Part shown: positions 3,953 through 36,601 of the stretch, in pieces
How positions within the stretch are numbered: position 1 is the first letter of the stretch
Layout: every line of letters begins with the position of its first letter
Sequence record: NC_019405.1
Reading direction: 5' to 3' (one strand)
DNA: 64,000 nucleotides
Notes under the pieces: generated by a model
What the model saw: only the letters and a program-made list of their open reading frames with translations
What the model was told of the DNA's origin: nothing
The model's database searches: none
Made by a program: the position numbers and the translations under genes

Positions 3953-4377
3953 TGGCAGACGTCCTTGGCGTCGCGCGCGGTCACGGGCGACATGTAGGTG
4001 TCGGGGTCCCAGGCGCCGGGCGTGCTGCCGCCATAGACATAGTCGCCCGGCGCGGGCGGCGTCATCGACCCGCCGTTGCTGGCGACCTTGCCCGGATTGG
4101 CGTAGGCCGAGAGCCACAGGCGCCCGTCGCTGCCGCGCAGGACGAATTGGCCGTTCTGGCGGCAGACGCGAGCGATGGTCATGCGCCATGCGTAGTTGAG
4201 CTTGGCCTTCTTGGCGGCCTCGTCCCGCAACCACTGTTCATGTCCCAGGCGCGCCCAGCGCGCCTTCTTGGCCACGAGGTCCTTATGCTCCTGCGACCAG
4301 AGGGGGTGGTTGTACTCGTCGCACGCCGAGAGGCTGATCCCGGCGACGACGAGCAGGAGGAGAGCGCCGCGCCGCAT
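3949..4377 (-). CDS. putative lipoprotein (142 aa)
   Basis: MRRGALLLLVVAGISLSA-C signal with lipobox; start overlaps the NAMPT stop. Confidence 0.75.
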   Translation of the reverse strand: MRRGALLLLVVAGISLSACDEYNHPLWSQEHKDLVAKKARWARLGHEQWLRDEAAKKAKLNYAWRMTIARVCRQNGQFVLRGSDGRLWLSAYANPGKVASNGGSMTPPAPGDYVYGGSTPGAWDPDTYMSPVTARDAKDVCQ

Positions 4378-5807
4378 CAGGCGATCTCGTAGCCGGCCGC
4401 GACCCGCTCGCGGATTTGGTCCAGGGTCGCCGGCTCCAGCACCTTGCCGGTGTTGAAGACCTCGTCCAGCAGGTCGTGCTCGACGACGTCGCCCTCGTGG
4501 ACCGTGATGGTCTCGAAGCGGCCGTCCTCGGTCGTCACCAGGGCCAGCTTGCCCTTCTTGGAGACCTTGCCCGGATCGGTGATCGGGTCCTTGTAGATTT
4601 CGACCCACTCGCCGTTGATCTCCTGGGCCGAGGACTTCATCGCCCACTTGTTGGTGTCGCGGTCCAGGTCGCCCGTCGCCAGACCGCCGCCGGCGGCCGT
4701 GATGATGCTGTCGGGCGCGACGCCGATGTTGCGGGCCAGGATGAACGGGTCCATGTGGGTGTTCTCGTTCATGCCGTCGCCCTGGAGGGCCTTGGCGCCC
4801 AGGTTCAGCACGTCCAGGCCGTGGCTGTTCTTCTGGGTCCCGAAACCGGCGGCCAGGGTCTGGACGACCGGCGGGATGACCTTGAAGAGGTCGCCCGAAT
4901 CCGGGCGGCAGACCGGGGTCAGGTTCTTGTTGGCGATCAGTTCCTTGCGCTCGGTCAGCTTGCCGGCGAAGCGGAAGATGTCCCAGGTGTCGCCGACCAG
5001 CGAGAAGATCGAGCCGGGAGGCACCTTGTTCAGGCAGTGGTCGATATAGTCGTCGTCGTTGTCGCGCCCGAACGCGCACGAGATCGAGTGCTCCGAGGCC
5101 AGGACCGAATAGCCCGACATCTCGCTGAAGTAGTTGATATTCGCCGCCCGCACGCCGGGGACGTTGTCCGAGCCCTGGAAGTGGAAGAGGTGGGCGATGC
5201 CGGCCAGGACCGAGTGGTCATAGCCCATGGTCCCGCGCGAGGAGAAGTCGAGGAAGGCGAACGGCGACATCGGGGTGTCGCTGTTGGCTTCCCAGAAGCT
5301 CTTGATCCGCGTGGCGATGCCGTTGACGCGCGCGGCGATCGTCGAGGCCGTCCAGACGTCGCGCAGGATCATGGTCTCGAAGTAGGAGGTCAGCCAGGGC
5401 AGGCGCGGGTCGAGGTTCTCGACCGAGATCAGCGCGTTGCGGATCGGGATCATCACGCCCTCGGGCACGGCCTTGATCCGCAGCGGGAGATAGCCGCCGT
5501 ACTCGTTCAGGATGATCTCCCAGCCGTCGCGGTTGAACGGCAGGCCGTGGGCCGGCACGAACGCGGCCATCTCCTCGACGTCGGCGCGGGTGACCGGCTT
5601 GCCGAGCTTCTGGAAGAGCAGGCGCTGGAACGCCGCCAGCATCACCTTGGGATAGCGCCCGCCCCGGCTCTCGATGTAGCTGTAGACGGTGGTGCAGCCG
5701 TCGCGATAGAGCAGCCAGTGCCCCAGCTTGTAGCTGTCGGTGTCGGCGATCAGGTTATAGGTCTCGACGGGCGGCGTGCCGTCCCAGTTGGCGAGGTCAA
5801 AGGCCAT
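4377..5807 (-). CDS. nadV: nicotinamide phosphoribosyltransferase (NAMPT)
   Basis: DTDSYK, DF.SRG, ASEHS, SLVGDTWD, RPDSGD, LQGDG, GGGL, RDT...AMK, KDPITDPGKVSKKG motifs. Confidence 0.95.
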   Translation of the reverse strand: MAFDLANWDGTPPVETYNLIADTDSYKLGHWLLYRDGCTTVYSYIESRGGRYPKVMLAAFQRLLFQKLGKPVTRADVEEMAAFVPAHGLPFNRDGWEIILNEYGGYLPLRIKAVPEGVMIPIRNALISVENLDPRLPWLTSYFETMILRDVWTASTIAARVNGIATRIKSFWEANSDTPMSPFAFLDFSSRGTMGYDHSVLAGIAHLFHFQGSDNVPGVRAANINYFSEMSGYSVLASEHSISCAFGRDNDDDYIDHCLNKVPPGSIFSLVGDTWDIFRFAGKLTERKELIANKNLTPVCRPDSGDLFKVIPPVVQTLAAGFGTQKNSHGLDVLNLGAKALQGDGMNENTHMDPFILARNIGVAPDSIITAAGGGLATGDLDRDTNKWAMKSSAQEINGEWVEIYKDPITDPGKVSKKGKLALVTTEDGRFETITVHEGDVVEHDLLDEVFNTGKVLEPATLDQIRERVAAGYEIA

Positions 5808-32634: not shown

Positions 32635-34758
32635 TCAGACGTCCAGAGCGAAGGCCGGCGGGGAGACGTCCGGCTTCTGAATGATGAATCCCCGATCCAA
32701 GAGGGGCGGGAAGACCTGCTTGAGCACGCCGGCCGCGACCCCGGCTTCCTCGGCGATTTCGGCGAACGTGAAGGCCTCGCGCTGGCCGGCGCTGGCGACA
32801 AACAGATCGTTGAGCGCCAGGATCACCGCGCCCGCCGGACTGATCTCGTAGGCCATGTCGAAATTCGGGTCTTCCGACAGCCGCAGCAGGCCTTCCGCCT
32901 CCAGGTTCGCGATGAGCGCCTTGAGTTGGTCGACCTTGACCGCGCCAAGATGGGTTTGGATTTCCCAGGGCGCCGCCGGCTCCTCGGCGCGCACGGCTTG
33001 CAGCGTCGCGATCAAGGCGATCGCCGGCATGGCCCGCACGATCATCTCGTCGCCAACCGTCAGGTCCGGGGCGTTGACCAGCAGGTCATTGATCACCGCG
33101 TCGCCGTGGGTCTCGACATAGGTCCGCAGCCGCTTGAGGGCGACCAGGAAATCGTCCTTGGTGATCGGCTCGATGCGGAAGGTCAGGAGCGGGTCGGTCG
33201 GAATCTCCGAGAAGTAGGCCCGACCCCGGTGGCTCCAGCCCTCGACCACATGCAGGAAGAGATCGATCGGCATGGCGACGGCGCCAAAGCCCAGTCGCGC
33301 ATCGTCCGTCGCCTCCTCGACCTGCGCCAAGGCGTTGTCGATCGCTTCGAGCGTGAAGCCCCCGACAAGGCCGTTTTCCGCCGCGTCCAGCACGTTGGCC
33401 GCTTCTTCGGTGCCGAGCCCTTCGACGACCATTTCCGAGGCCTCCTGAGCCGTTTCCTGCGGCAGGGCGTCGGCGAGCTTGCTCATCGCCTCGGCGACGC
33501 CGCTCGTGTCGAGTTCCAGCTTCAGGGCCAGCTTCTCGGGACGCGCCGAGTAGGGCACGCCCTGGATCACCACGGCGCCCAGGTCGCCGACGACGCGCTT
33601 GGTCACTTCCAGATAGGCGTAGCGCGAGGCGGCGTTGAGCAGCGACAGCCGTTCGAAGACGATCTGCTGCTCCTGCTCGCGCGACAGGATGCCCGTCTCC
33701 AGGATGAACAGCGGCTCGGAGCCGTCCAACGGAGGCTTGGCCTCGCCGTCGTCTTCCGGAAGGTCCTCGTCGAAATCGGCGCCGCTGATCGGCTCGCTCT
33801 CCGGCGGGGTGAAGCGGATGCCCGGCTCGCGGGGCGGTTCGGCGGGAGTGGCGTCGTCGAGAGGCATGTCGGTCCTTTGAGGCTTGGAGGTGATGAAGAG
33901 CGTGGTGAGATCGACGTCCCAGACCCCGCGCCCGTCGGTGAAGAGCGCCATGAAGGTCCCCAGGCGCGCATCCCAGCGGATGGTCTGGATCACGCCGTTG
34001 ACTTCGCCATAGACGCCGGTCGCCCCCACGAGTTCATCGCGCAGGACCTCCGCATGGTCGTGGCACTCACCAAGCGTCGCCGGACGCACGGCGTGGAACG
34101 GGTATTGCTGATAGGCGCCCGGCGGCGAGACGAGGCGGACATTGACGTAGAGCGGCCCCAGATAGGTGTGGGCGTCGCGCAGGAAGCCGACCACGGTCTC
34201 CCCGTCGTTCTGGGTCGCCACCACGGGCATGCCGGCGCAGTTAGCCGTCAGGACCGCCGGATAGTCCTGGGGATAGGCCACGGCGTACAGGTGGAGATGA
34301 TCACCCCGGCGCTGGGCCTTCCAGTCGGCGACACACCAAGCCGCCACCCGCGTGGCCCCGAACTCCGGCGTCTCCTCGATCAAGACGCCGCCGTCCGGAA
34401 GGTCCGCCTGCCCGACGTAAGGAACGACCTCGCTATGGCTGACGCTCCAGGCGGGCTTGGGAAATTGCGGGGTGATCATGAGCTTCTCGGTGAAGGTGAG
34501 ATTGATGGCGTCGGCGTAGTGAACATACGGGCCGACCGGGGTAGTCCAGGGCGGATCACCCTTGCGGATGTCCGACAGCGGCACTGCGACGTGCCTGCCG
34601 TTGGGCTGGACGATGTCGGCCAGGATGCGCGGCGGCTGGTGCATCAGGGTCACGACGTGCCCCTCGCCCGCCTCGAAGGTGCGGCTCTTGGGCCACCAGA
34701 CCTTGGACCCGGTCCAGTGGATCGACTGGATGACGAGGTCTTGTTCGGTCCCGATCAT
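32635..34758 (-). CDS. 707-aa multidomain protein (SH3-like beta segments, acidic linker, C-terminal winged helices)
   Basis: Long ORF with strong bias; C-terminal L.NLEAEGLL...Y.ISPAG and FTFAEIAEEAG...LLDRGFI. Confidence 0.8.
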   Translation of the reverse strand: MIGTEQDLVIQSIHWTGSKVWWPKSRTFEAGEGHVVTLMHQPPRILADIVQPNGRHVAVPLSDIRKGDPPWTTPVGPYVHYADAINLTFTEKLMITPQFPKPAWSVSHSEVVPYVGQADLPDGGVLIEETPEFGATRVAAWCVADWKAQRRGDHLHLYAVAYPQDYPAVLTANCAGMPVVATQNDGETVVGFLRDAHTYLGPLYVNVRLVSPPGAYQQYPFHAVRPATLGECHDHAEVLRDELVGATGVYGEVNGVIQTIRWDARLGTFMALFTDGRGVWDVDLTTLFITSKPQRTDMPLDDATPAEPPREPGIRFTPPESEPISGADFDEDLPEDDGEAKPPLDGSEPLFILETGILSREQEQQIVFERLSLLNAASRYAYLEVTKRVVGDLGAVVIQGVPYSARPEKLALKLELDTSGVAEAMSKLADALPQETAQEASEMVVEGLGTEEAANVLDAAENGLVGGFTLEAIDNALAQVEEATDDARLGFGAVAMPIDLFLHVVEGWSHRGRAYFSEIPTDPLLTFRIEPITKDDFLVALKRLRTYVETHGDAVINDLLVNAPDLTVGDEMIVRAMPAIALIATLQAVRAEEPAAPWEIQTHLGAVKVDQLKALIANLEAEGLLRLSEDPNFDMAYEISPAGAVILALNDLFVASAGQREAFTFAEIAEEAGVAAGVLKQVFPPLLDRGFIIQKPDVSPPAFALDV

Positions 34759-35180
34759 GCGGACGCCGCCGCGCCGGCCGGCGTCAAGCCGTAGATGGTG
34801 GGGCCGCGCGGCGACTTTCCGAGCGCGACCACTTCCAGATAGCCCATATTATTCAAAGCCTTGGCTGTTTCATGATCGGGGTGATCGTTGAAGACGTTGA
34901 GGCGCCCGCCCTCGCCCATCGCCTGGGCGGCGCGCAGAAGACTCGCCTCGGCTTCGGTCAGGGTGACCAAGGCGACGTCCTCCAGCGCCACGTCGATCAC
35001 GCAGGTCTGACCCTGGTGAACAAACTCGATAATCGCCAGCCGGCGATAGGTCCCCGGCAGGACCGCGAGGCAGACGCCTCGGACCTCGACCTTCTGGCGG
35101 GCGGTGATCGGGAGATAGAGGCTCGTCTTGACGGCCTTGCCCTTGAGGGACAGATGCTCGTGCGTCGCCAGCGGGATCAT
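34755..35180 (-). CDS. hypothetical protein (beta-barrel plus winged-helix-like C-terminus)
   Basis: AKALNNMGYL...IYGLTPAG. Confidence 0.75.
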   Translation of the reverse strand: MIPLATHEHLSLKGKAVKTSLYLPITARQKVEVRGVCLAVLPGTYRRLAIIEFVHQGQTCVIDVALEDVALVTLTEAEASLLRAAQAMGEGGRLNVFNDHPDHETAKALNNMGYLEVVALGKSPRGPTIYGLTPAGAAASA

Positions 35181-35422
35181 GGCTCGACCTTCCGGACAGT
35201 GTAGGAGAATTCGTCGTGGACGCGACCGTCGAAACTAGCCTCGTAGCCGGGGCCGAGTTCGGCCAGGATGCGCGCCTCGATCTCGGCGAAGTCGATTTTC
35301 GCCATCGCCTGTTCGGCCGCCCGCATCTGCTGGAGGAAGCCGTCCTTGATCTGGCGCCCCGCCTCGGTGCGGATCGGGATGTTCTGGATCGGCGGCTCGG
35401 ATTTCGACAGACGCTCGCCCAT
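35177..35422 (-). CDS. 81-aa mini-protein made of family A DNA polymerase palm motifs
   Basis: RLSKSEPPIQNIPIRTEAGRQIKDGF, DFAEIEARILA, VHDEF in Pol I order; coupled to gcrA (TGATG) and the downstream gene (ATGA). Confidence 0.8.
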   Translation of the reverse strand: MGERLSKSEPPIQNIPIRTEAGRQIKDGFLQQMRAAEQAMAKIDFAEIEARILAELGPGYEASFDGRVHDEFSYTVRKVEP

Positions 35423-35970
35423 CAGGCCCTCCGGCGATAGACCCGCACCGGGCGGGTGGGGAGGCGTTTCTCGGGCGGCTTGTAGGCGACCAGGGCATGG
35501 CTGATGCAGTAGACGCCTGCCTTGGCGCGGCACCCGCAATGGCCAAAGTCCGGCGAGTTCGGGTCGCCATAGGGCCAGCGGCACATTCCGCGCTTGAGTT
35601 CGGCCGTCGCGAACAGCCGCGCCGGGCGCGGCGGGATGACCGCCGTTCCTTCGGGGACCAGGGCGAGCTTGGGCTTGGCCGGCGGAGCGGGCTTTTCGAC
35701 CTTCTTGGGCTTGCGCGCCGTGGCCTTCTTGACCTTGCGGACCTGGATGCCCAGGCCGCGCGTCTTCTTGCGGCGGGCGGTCGGAGGCGGAACCTTCTCG
35801 CCCAGTTCGCCGGCGGCCTTCAGTCGGTCGGCCTTGCCGCAGACGGCGCTCTTGGTGCGCGGCACGCTCAGGCGCTGACCGATCTCCTTGGTCCCGACCG
35901 GCTCCGCCCAGAGCTTCTTGAGCAGGGCGATGTCCTCGTCCGGCCAGTCGGAATTCCGCTTCTTCACCAC
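35422..35970 (-). CDS. gcrA: GcrA cell-cycle regulator homologue
   Basis: W.DE.IALLKKLW...EIG..L...TKSAVCGKA.RL N-terminal HTH; CRWP.GDP...F..CG...YC..H...AY C-terminal domain. Confidence 0.93.
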   Translation of the reverse strand: MVKKRNSDWPDEDIALLKKLWAEPVGTKEIGQRLSVPRTKSAVCGKADRLKAAGELGEKVPPPTARRKKTRGLGIQVRKVKKATARKPKKVEKPAPPAKPKLALVPEGTAVIPPRPARLFATAELKRGMCRWPYGDPNSPDFGHCGCRAKAGVYCISHALVAYKPPEKRLPTRPVRVYRRRA

Positions 35971-35977
35971 GCTTGCA

Positions 35978-36157
35978 CTACTCCTTGATCTCGACGCTCT
36001 TGGGCGGATTGGGATGAGGAACGAAGACCAGGGCCACGTCCTGACCGCCGGTATAGCGCGTGCGCCGGCTGTAGAGCCAGCCGCCTTCCACCGCCAACCG
36101 CTCGGTCACCTGACCATCGGCTTCGTCGATCTTTTCCCACTTGGACTTCTTAGCCAT
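35978..36157 (-). CDS. hypothetical protein (59 aa, not in ORF track), paralogue of 43635-43931
   Basis: MAKKSKWEKIDEADGQVTERLAVEGGWLYSRR...VALVFVP; GAGGGG SD. Confidence 0.8.
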   Translation of the reverse strand: MAKKSKWEKIDEADGQVTERLAVEGGWLYSRRTRYTGGQDVALVFVPHPNPPKSVEIKE

Positions 36158-36178
36158 CTTCCCCTCGAATTTGGCGGC

Positions 36179-36207
36179 ACCCTAGAGGAGCGTTCGAGTG
36201 TTGACAA
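36179..36207 (-). promoter_or_regulatory. leftward promoter of the divergent switch (spacer-operator type)
   Basis: TTGTCA-ACACTCGAACGCTCCTC(17)-TAGGGT. Confidence 0.65.
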
Positions 36208-36220
36208 GCACCAATGTCGC

Positions 36221-36279
36221 TGGCTTTCGAGTGTTGACAAGTCCGGTGCTCGTCTATAGGGGAGACCGGGACGACAACG
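36221..36279 (+). promoter_or_regulatory. rightward promoter cassette of the divergent switch
   Basis: TGGCT-TTCGA-GTGTTGACA-17-TAGGGG then GACGACAACG. Confidence 0.85.
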
Positions 36280-36292
36280 AAAGGAGCCTGCC

Positions 36293-36601
36293 ATGCGCTA
36301 TGTGCTCGACTATGCCGACGACCGGGACAAGCCGGTCTACACCAATTTCCAGGCCGGCGACCGCAAGGCGGCCATCGCCAAGGCCAAGCGCCTGCTCGCC
36401 AAGGCGATCAAGACCGTCGATTTCTCGCTCCACAGGGCCTACATCTTCGTCGATCCGACGGGCGTCGCCCGCGACGTCGACGACATGATCCCGTTCGGCA
36501 TGCTGAGCACGATGGCCTACGCCAGCATCGTCACCCCGTCGATGATCTCGTTCGACGACCGCGACGCCAAGGCCGCGATCGCCGCGAGGCTCGCCCAATG
36601 A
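36293..36601 (+). CDS. hypothetical protein (102 aa)
   Basis: First right-arm gene; AAGGAG SD. Confidence 0.8.
   Translation: MRYVLDYADDRDKPVYTNFQAGDRKAAIAKAKRLLAKAIKTVDFSLHRAYIFVDPTGVARDVDDMIPFGMLSTMAYASIVTPSMISFDDRDAKAAIAARLAQ

Follow-up and report, generated by a model that had tools for sequence, protein, structure and literature searches.

The window analysed here, a stretch of 64,000 nucleotides (nt) from record NC_019405.1, belongs to the Caulobacter phage phiCbK (record coordinate = window coordinate + 124000), and the subject of this study is gp221, an open reading frame (ORF) of 81 codons plus TGA on the minus strand at 35177..35422. The ORF is identical to CbK_gp221 of JX100813, and a 1.3-kb query around it gave 100% identity to both JX100813 and NC_019405. 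Judging from its sequence, gp221 is a descendant of the palm of a family A DNA polymerase of the bacterial type (Pol I), retained as an intact gene, and it is almost certainly not a DNA polymerase. It lies directly downstream of gp222, which encodes a GcrA-like regulator (35422..35970, minus strand; Pfam GcrA expectation value E = 5e-25), and directly upstream of gp220, which encodes a protein of 141 amino acids (aa; 34755..35180, minus strand; PHROG 11942). The genes overlap at both junctions: the gp221 ATG shares one base, the A, with the gcrA stop codon (TGATG, 35420-35424), and the gp221 TGA is overlapped by the ATG of gp220 (ATGA, 35177-35180). A Shine-Dalgarno-like GGAGGG located 4 nt upstream of the gp221 ATG, within the end of gcrA (35427..35432, minus strand), is a putative ribosome-binding site. 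The G+C content (GC) of gp221 at codon positions 1/2/3 is 0.67/0.41/0.86, and the neighbouring genes are alike in this respect. The overlapping junctions and the neighbour-like GC pattern bear out the initial annotation, in which the frame was described as intact, of normal codon bias and coupled to gcrA and the next gene.

The resemblance of gp221 to a Pol I palm is already in the databases. Its GenBank label since 2012 has been "putative Pol I DNA polymerase, palm domain", RefSeq and a number of GenBank records name it "DNA polymerase" or "DNA polymerase I", and the UniRef and PHROGs names are likewise of the Pol I or polymerase kind; in particular, PHROG 12116, a phiCbK-like 81-aa 'DNA polymerase' family, is matched at 81/81 positions (E = 2.8e-56). 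The phiCbK genome paper, which deals with gp123, a complete replicase of the T7-like kind, and with gp222, the homologue of GcrA, does not mention gp221 (PMC3556154). What is new is the analysis of the gene.

The Pol I profile of Pfam (DNA_pol_A, PF00476) matches residues 4-56 of gp221 with E = 8.3e-12 and 45.2 bits, above the cut-off of 34.3, and the match is confined to positions 120-170 of the 381 in the profile. NCBIfam equivalog models of bacterial PolA match as well (best E = 2.6e-12), though at scores below those set for equivalence to the full-length enzyme (46.1 bits vs a cut-off of 720 for PRK05755, and 43.9 vs 600 for TIGR00593). Against solved Pol I structures, residues 4-57 align with a 2-3-residue insertion as the sole gap (6vdc 343-394, Klenow chain 345-395; E-values in the PDB down to 8.7e-11). 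Residues 4-57 are thus an unbroken copy of Pol I from motif 2 through motif A, as the initial annotation had claimed for the two motifs from consensus sequences, and the profile and structure-based alignments agree on this. Within the segment, residues 4-29 (RLSKSEPPIQNIPIRTEAGRQIKDGF; 35336..35413, minus strand) are derived from motif 2 (TGRLSS..PNLQNIP.R...GR.IR.AF) and form the most conserved block of the family. They are followed by a diverged linker, residues 30-42 (LQQMRAAEQAMAK; 35297..35335, minus strand), which stands where Pol I has the strand leading into motif A and is predicted to be helical, and then by residues 43-57 (IDFAEIEARILAELG; 35252..35296, minus strand), which derive from motif A (DYSQIELRI.AHLS), D44 being the metal-binding Asp and E49 the steric-gate Glu. 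Here IDFAEIE aligns to aDYsqIE in the Pol I structures, and DFAEIE retains the Asp and Glu of DYSQIE. Counting along the Klenow alignment, R4 would correspond to R668 and D44 to D705, and the equivalents of R668, Q677/N678, R682, D705 and E710 of bacterial Pol I are all retained. No residue of gp221 aligns to motif B or the O-helix; the profile match ends at residue 57 and the ORF at residue 81.

The closest matches in a genome scan were mycobacterial PolA genes, with 55-58% identity over 53 residues. Nucleotide identity to the polA genes of Caulobacteraceae and other bacteria is 64-68%, so that the capture is old, and a recent capture from the host is rejected. Local alignments to bacterial polA, including those of Caulobacteraceae and of Brevundimonas metagenome-assembled genomes, contain exact runs of 17-26 nt; these presumably fall in the QNIPIRTE codons, at about 35360-35390 of the window, and probably reflect conserved residues together with common GC-rich codon use. 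A joint capture of gcrA and polA from one bacterial locus was also considered and is unsupported, as a GcrA-like or gp220-like gene was found within 4 kb of polA at 0/80 loci.

gp221 was found in 26 Caulobacter phage records, comprising Shapirovirus, Poindextervirus and some unclassified relatives, and the gene order around it is constant (gp223, gcrA, gp221, gp220, gp219), with conserved overlapping junctions. A tblastn search with GcrA likewise gave 26 Caulobacter phage records, and the accessions agree wherever both lists are readable. CcrColossus, the sixth phage studied by Gill et al., is reported by them to lack GcrA (PMC3556154), and Colossus is not among the tblastn matches of gp221 either. 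Selection was measured between three deep lineages (phiCbK; Rogue/BL10; BL57). The ratio of non-synonymous to synonymous substitution rates (dN/dS) is 0.28-0.32 for gp221, with dS of 0.5-0.6, as against 0.47-0.65 for gcrA and 0.59-1.07 for gp220 at similar dS, and the excess of synonymous over non-synonymous change in gp221 is significant (Fisher P = 0.001). Between genera, amino-acid identity is 74-78% for gp221 and 57-62% for GcrA. All 26 records are free of frameshifts and internal stops in gp221, and its length differs in BL57 only, where an in-frame deletion of 15 nt removes 5 residues of the linker between the motifs. Since dN/dS is low, the boundaries are fixed and the only indel is in frame, gp221 is an intact gene under purifying selection and not a decaying pseudogene. 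The argument against a decaying fragment made in the initial annotation therefore stands, the relatives showing neither relaxed selection nor variable breakpoints.

Substitutions are concentrated in residues 23-34, 62-64 and 73-81, leaving three nearly invariant blocks: 3-22 (motif 2), 35-61 (the motif A helix and GPGY) and 65-72 (DGR.HDEF). Throughout the family, the motif A block is invariant save for A46S and I52V, and D44, E49, H69, D70 and E71 do not vary at all. The family-invariant positions lie on the more informative columns of Pol I (1.35 vs 0.86 bits, P = 0.03), and 23/38 of them carry the Pol I consensus residue.

The tail of the protein (residues 58-81) is more difficult to place. 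Its possible placements were scored in an ungapped scan of a 36-sequence, 900-column PolA profile, with column-shuffle controls. Among all profile offsets, residues 59-67 (GYEASFDGR; 35222..35248, minus strand), which read GYEITLDGR in BL10, score highest at the GYVETLxGR block between motifs B and C, a suggestive match of 8.9 bits for G59-R67 that is reached by 1.5% of shuffles. Residues 68-78 (VHDEFSYTVRK; 35189..35221, minus strand) resemble either motif C (QVHDELVFEVxK) or the strand that precedes motif 2 (RIHTSFNQTV). For R67-K78 the best site in the profile is motif C (QVHDELVLEVKK; 13.5 bits, reached by 0.4% of shuffles), while for D65-K78 it is the strand just upstream of motif 2 (TGRIHTSFNQT; TGRIHTSFNQTVTA; 13.4 bits, 0.2% of shuffles). 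By hhalign the upstream strand comes first (E = 1.4e-3), followed by motif C (E = 5e-3) and the GYV block (E = 0.25), and HMMER places the tail of BL57 on motif C and that of the other three lineages on the upstream strand. BLASTP gave a secondary match of gp221 to motif C of the Pol I of phage Kimi (E = 0.024). The tail by itself has no Pfam match at E <= 10, and the HMMER match of gp221 never runs beyond residue 57-60. A collinear chain following motif A, in which the GYV block is succeeded by VHDE, scored better than shuffles with P = 0.008 at a 3-bit jump cost and P < 0.0005 at a 6-bit jump cost.

Two further histories of the tail were tried and rejected. A plain continuation of Pol I past motif A (G.DIH..TA), first prompted by several tblastn alignments, scores 5.1 bits, which 95% of shuffles reach. 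A model in which gp220 is a second, frameshifted copy that arose by tandem duplication or circular permutation is contradicted by BLASTP (E = 1.2) and by hhalign, which gives gp220 a probability of 0.2% against both Pol I and gp221. Of the remaining histories, we lean towards one in which two in-frame deletions fused the GYVxTLxGR block to motif C and so produced residues 59-78, because, of the options, this collinear origin accounts for the most residues with the simplest history. That the resemblance of the tail to Pol I is a coincidence seems doubtful, and an origin resembling a circular permutation, with the tail taken from the strand that precedes motif 2, seems unlikely. The initial annotation had assigned RVHDEFSYTV to motif C, had taken both catalytic aspartates as kept, and had the fingers replaced by about 10 residues. 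Motif C is indeed the best profile site and HDE is invariant, but the upstream strand fits equally well; D44 sits at motif A, whereas the second Asp is plausible only, given the rival placement of the tail; and motif B and the fingers are absent as stated, although the supposed replacement, G59-R67, itself resembles the GYVETLxGR block.

Two AlphaFold2 runs, made with 3 and with 84 aligned sequences, among which were Pol I fragments, gave models consisting of a coil (residues 1-19), two helices (20-41 and 45-56) and a beta-hairpin (60-68/71-78), with a mean predicted local distance difference test score (pLDDT) of 74 and predicted template modelling scores (pTM) of 0.33-0.41. In these models the coil is the most conserved segment, D44 lies between the two helices, H69-D70 are at the hairpin turn, and the strand that carries the motif A Asp in Pol I is modelled as a helix. 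The predicted hairpin geometry is compatible with a motif C-like turn. Foldseek searches of the PDB with both models found no significant match and no polymerase palm (best E = 2.0), and a Foldseek search of BFVD returned gp221 itself only. The BFVD model superposes poorly on the AlphaFold2 model (template modelling score, TM, 0.34), and therefore the tertiary arrangement is not reliably predicted. At this moderate confidence, a palm fold, which the initial annotation had suggested looking for with AlphaFold and Foldseek, is not supported by the models, which offer a coil, two helices and a hairpin in place of a motif A strand and a palm match.

Beyond the phiCbK-like phages, relatives are few. 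A word-based search with gp221 gave 3 clusters, and an exhaustive profile search of 1.84 billion representatives gave one strong cluster (175 bits), all other matches scoring <=59 bits and including thousands of ordinary Pol I proteins. Among the matches of the profile search were three complete mini Pol A ORFs in gene-dense, phage-like metagenomic contigs. The first, P0011 (78 aa, 72% GC; L091:1422-1658), is preceded by a gene with a weak match to sigma-70 region 2 (Sigma70_r2 E = 5e-4, which misses the Pfam cut-off), and a ParB-like gene overlaps it; P0149 (64 aa; L093:2103-2297) lies downstream of a primase fragment; and P0028 (79 aa; L094:2622-2861) has a Gly at the position of the motif A Asp. 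Like gp221, with which they share 42-50% identity, these ORFs begin with motif 2 or slightly ahead of it and stop 13-30 residues past motif A, and they have in common with it PP or PA before QNIP, D[FY]A (with Ala at the position of the DYS serine) and E[AF]RI. Unlike gp221, they have unrelated tails without DGR.HDE, save for an FHD in P0149, with P0011 and P0028 lacking any HDE tail; their gene neighbours also differ from those of gp221, and none of them is accompanied by gcrA. In a tree built from 56 columns, gp221, P0011 and P0149 fall together, away from the 62 polymerases, though without decisive support: the mini-ORF group requires 2 changes in the tree and forms one group in 34% of bootstrap trees. 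A common origin of the mini-ORFs and gp221 is accordingly not established, the tree being weak and the derived-looking motif A form, D[FY]A..EARI, being found in full-length phage Pol A as well. A second search, with a profile of all mini-ORFs, yielded no additional members; in IMG/VR only the known isolates carry gp221, and a degenerate DNA pattern for PPIQNIP[IL]RT had no match in the JGI metagenomes. The Sphingobium phage Lacusarx, a distant relative of phiCbK, encodes a hypothetical protein of 217 aa, LAV_00127 (L122:3839-4489, minus strand), that is 48% identical to gp221 residues 23-55 over 33 residues, the gp221-specific linker and IEARILA included, and that lacks the QNIP loop. The pairwise E-value of 4e-6 is inflated because the protein was located through a motif pattern; LAV_00127 may be a diverged, longer homologue of gp221.

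Compared with bacterial Pol I (the Klenow, Bst, Taq and mycobacterial Pol1 structures), gp221 is homologous from motif 2 through motif A and differs in nearly everything else, with 81 aa instead of about 900, no exonuclease domain, no thumb, no fingers and no motif B, and with a helical linker replacing the motif A strand in the models. Another parallel may be found in microProteins, small proteins that correspond to part of a larger protein and act by competition or non-productive binding, a concept developed for plants and animals. gp221 is like them in being small, in being a fragment of a multi-domain enzyme and in having kept ancestral interaction motifs under selection. It is unlike the classic cases in that its parent, Pol I, is a monomer, and the classic dimer-poisoning mechanism is therefore inapplicable.

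We propose, with a probability of about 0.5, that gp221 is an early microprotein derived from Pol I that has no catalytic role and acts by binding or mimicry. Lacking motif B, the fingers, the thumb and, according to the models, the motif A strand, it would not polymerise DNA. Catalysis is disfavoured because the protein has none of the parts that bind an incoming nucleotide and few of those that hold DNA, and also because it is mildly acidic (isoelectric point 4.9-6.1) and a related mini-ORF lacks the motif A Asp. Instead, a small scaffold of two helices and a hairpin would present motif 2, the primer-terminus loop of Pol I, together with acidic residues of the active site, and with these gp221 would bind, or compete for, a partner that normally engages a Pol I-type active site. 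Possible partners are a 3' primer terminus together with metal, some host or phage factor able to recognise Pol I, a sensor of a defence system and the GcrA homologue, which is co-translated with gp221 and may cooperate with it. The motif 2 segment may fold upon its partner, since this best-conserved part of gp221, a copy of the primer-terminus loop of Pol I, is predicted to be unstructured. Expression is probably early, given that gp221 shares a same-strand block with the downstream gp216 (tgrL), which is an early gene (PMC10688885). Several points weigh against this proposal. The mechanism is one that we infer; the moderate confidence of the models, together with the TM of 0.34, leaves the lack of a palm-like sheet unproven; motif C and the upstream strand account about equally for the tail, whose origin thus appears ambiguous; and the strict retention of D44, E49, H69, D70 and E71 is explained equally well by a retained metal or nucleotide chemistry and by mimicry.

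The latter point leads to the possibility of a minimal catalytic module, raised in the initial annotation, in which a mini-palm with two aspartates, perhaps as an oligomer or on DNA, would bind metal and carry out nucleotidyl transfer or pyrophosphorolysis alone. The alignment of D44 to the motif A Asp, the invariant HDE at a hairpin turn as in motif C, the top score of motif C for R67-K78 and the secondary BLASTP match to the Kimi polymerase all speak for it. However, motif B and the O-helix for the triphosphate, the thumb and the predicted motif A strand (modelled as a helix) are absent, no polymerase palm is matched structurally, the tail fits the strand upstream of motif 2 equally, and among the mini-ORFs P0028 has the Gly at the Asp position while both P0011 and P0028 are without HDE, so that we regard such a module as highly improbable and the suggestion as unsupported. 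A related and very unlikely version would have gp221 as a collinear mini-palm splice of motif 2, motif A, GYVxTLxGR and motif C, with D44 and D70 coordinating metal and the motif 2 loop gripping the 3' primer terminus, and serving either as a minimal enzyme for nucleotidyl transfer or pyrophosphorolysis or, during takeover, as a cap by which DNA 3' ends are protected or blocked; if true, the scattered metagenomic mini Pol A ORFs would belong to the same overlooked class of phage microproteins. It had also been suggested that gp221 is a half-enzyme that supplies palm elements in trans to another polypeptide of a split polymerase. Split phage Pol A genes, whose pieces reside in separate ORFs parted by homing endonucleases or introns, are known (PMC10684548), and gp221 is like them in being a short ORF with part of a Pol A domain. 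In phiCbK, however, complementary pieces are missing: a six-frame hmmsearch of the whole genome with a PolA profile matched gp221 and gp123 only, with no further Pol I fragments in the window or elsewhere in the genome, and gp123 is a complete T7-like polymerase (PMC3556154) that aligns across motifs A to C by itself, which sets phiCbK apart from the split-Pol A phages, and is unrelated in sequence to gp221 (BLASTP E about 1, which also excludes a derivation of gp221 from gp123). gp220 shows no relation to gp221 or Pol I (hhalign probability 0.2%), and no homing endonuclease or intron lies beside gp221. Since other Pol I pieces are lacking, gp220 is unrelated and there is no flanking endonuclease or intron, the reading of gp221 as a piece of a split polymerase is not supported, and a half-enzyme is extremely improbable, and largely refuted where the partner is phage-encoded.

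The other alternatives concern binding partners or the lack of any function. gp221 could be a decoy that mimics a Pol A active-site epitope and binds or titrates a host immune sensor or a 3'-end competitor, a reading that we consider improbable. It would agree with a small, acidic protein that is probably encoded in an early block and in which selection preserves precisely the Pol I-like motifs, with the recurrence of mini Pol A ORFs in other phage-like contigs, and with the description of defences that target phage polymerases or 3' ends (reviewed in PMC10684548). Nevertheless, no PADLOC model matches gp221 or its neighbours, a cognate defence system in Caulobacter is not known, and the phage's own replicase is T7-like with other motif sequences, so that gp221 does not mimic it. 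Alternatively, gp221 might be an accessory factor of GcrA that binds gp222 or shares a step of transcription takeover, its Pol I ancestry being incidental. The shared phyletic pattern (26/26 records), the one-base stop/start overlap kept in all lineages and the position of P0011 behind a weakly sigma-70-like gene would be explained in this way, but the conserved residues are the ancestral ones of Pol I and not a new surface, and the other mini-ORFs have no GcrA neighbour, which makes this alternative quite unlikely. It could also be that the ORF is a functionless remnant that persists by hitch-hiking or as a spacer coupling gcrA to gp220, as its narrow distribution (the single cluster at 175 bits vs <=59 bits for the rest) and the differing tails and 3' ends of the three metagenomic mini-ORFs might suggest. 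Against this are a dN/dS of about 0.3, below that of both flanking genes, an identity between genera exceeding that of GcrA, and the intact frames with their lone in-frame indel; we judge a remnant to be as improbable as a decoy.

Should gp221 have a function, it would clearly exemplify how a phage can retain a small part of a polymerase active site as a small protein in its own right, and the well-developed system of Caulobacter with phiCbK would offer a tractable model for the conversion of enzyme fragments into regulators, mimics or decoys. Without a function, it is an ordinary oddity among annotated genes. For now, gp221 is of modest interest as a candidate phage microprotein of polymerase origin, and the fact that it is named a polymerase in several records calls for caution in annotation.

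Some observations concern the surrounding block of genes. A scan of 34500-36500 found no promoter or terminator. Further upstream, a gap of 135 nt at 36158-36292 separates the divergently transcribed gp224 and gp223 blocks and is likely the promoter region of the gcrA-gp221 operon; a sigma-70 consensus scan of this gap gave no match. The frame of gp221 is open for a further 177-223 codons upstream (35423-35977, minus strand), over nearly all of gcrA, in every lineage checked. A frameshift fusion of gp221 with this open frame was considered and dismissed, as the open frame is expected from gcrA, where a GC content of about 0.9 at third codon positions leaves few stop codons in that frame. On the downstream side, the C-terminal segments of gp220 (34755-35180) and gp219 (32635-34758), both on the minus strand, look like winged-helix DNA-binding domains by eye only, and gp219 has a faint TetR_N match (E = 0.08). 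Together with GcrA and the XRE regulator gp216 (tgrL), gp219 and gp220 make up a block that looks like a regulator cluster. In other lineages gp219 is one gene of about 620-670 aa, whereas its homologue in phage BL57 is annotated as two overlapping ORFs (L003:3671-4123 and 4090-5526), which may represent a frameshift or a genuine split.

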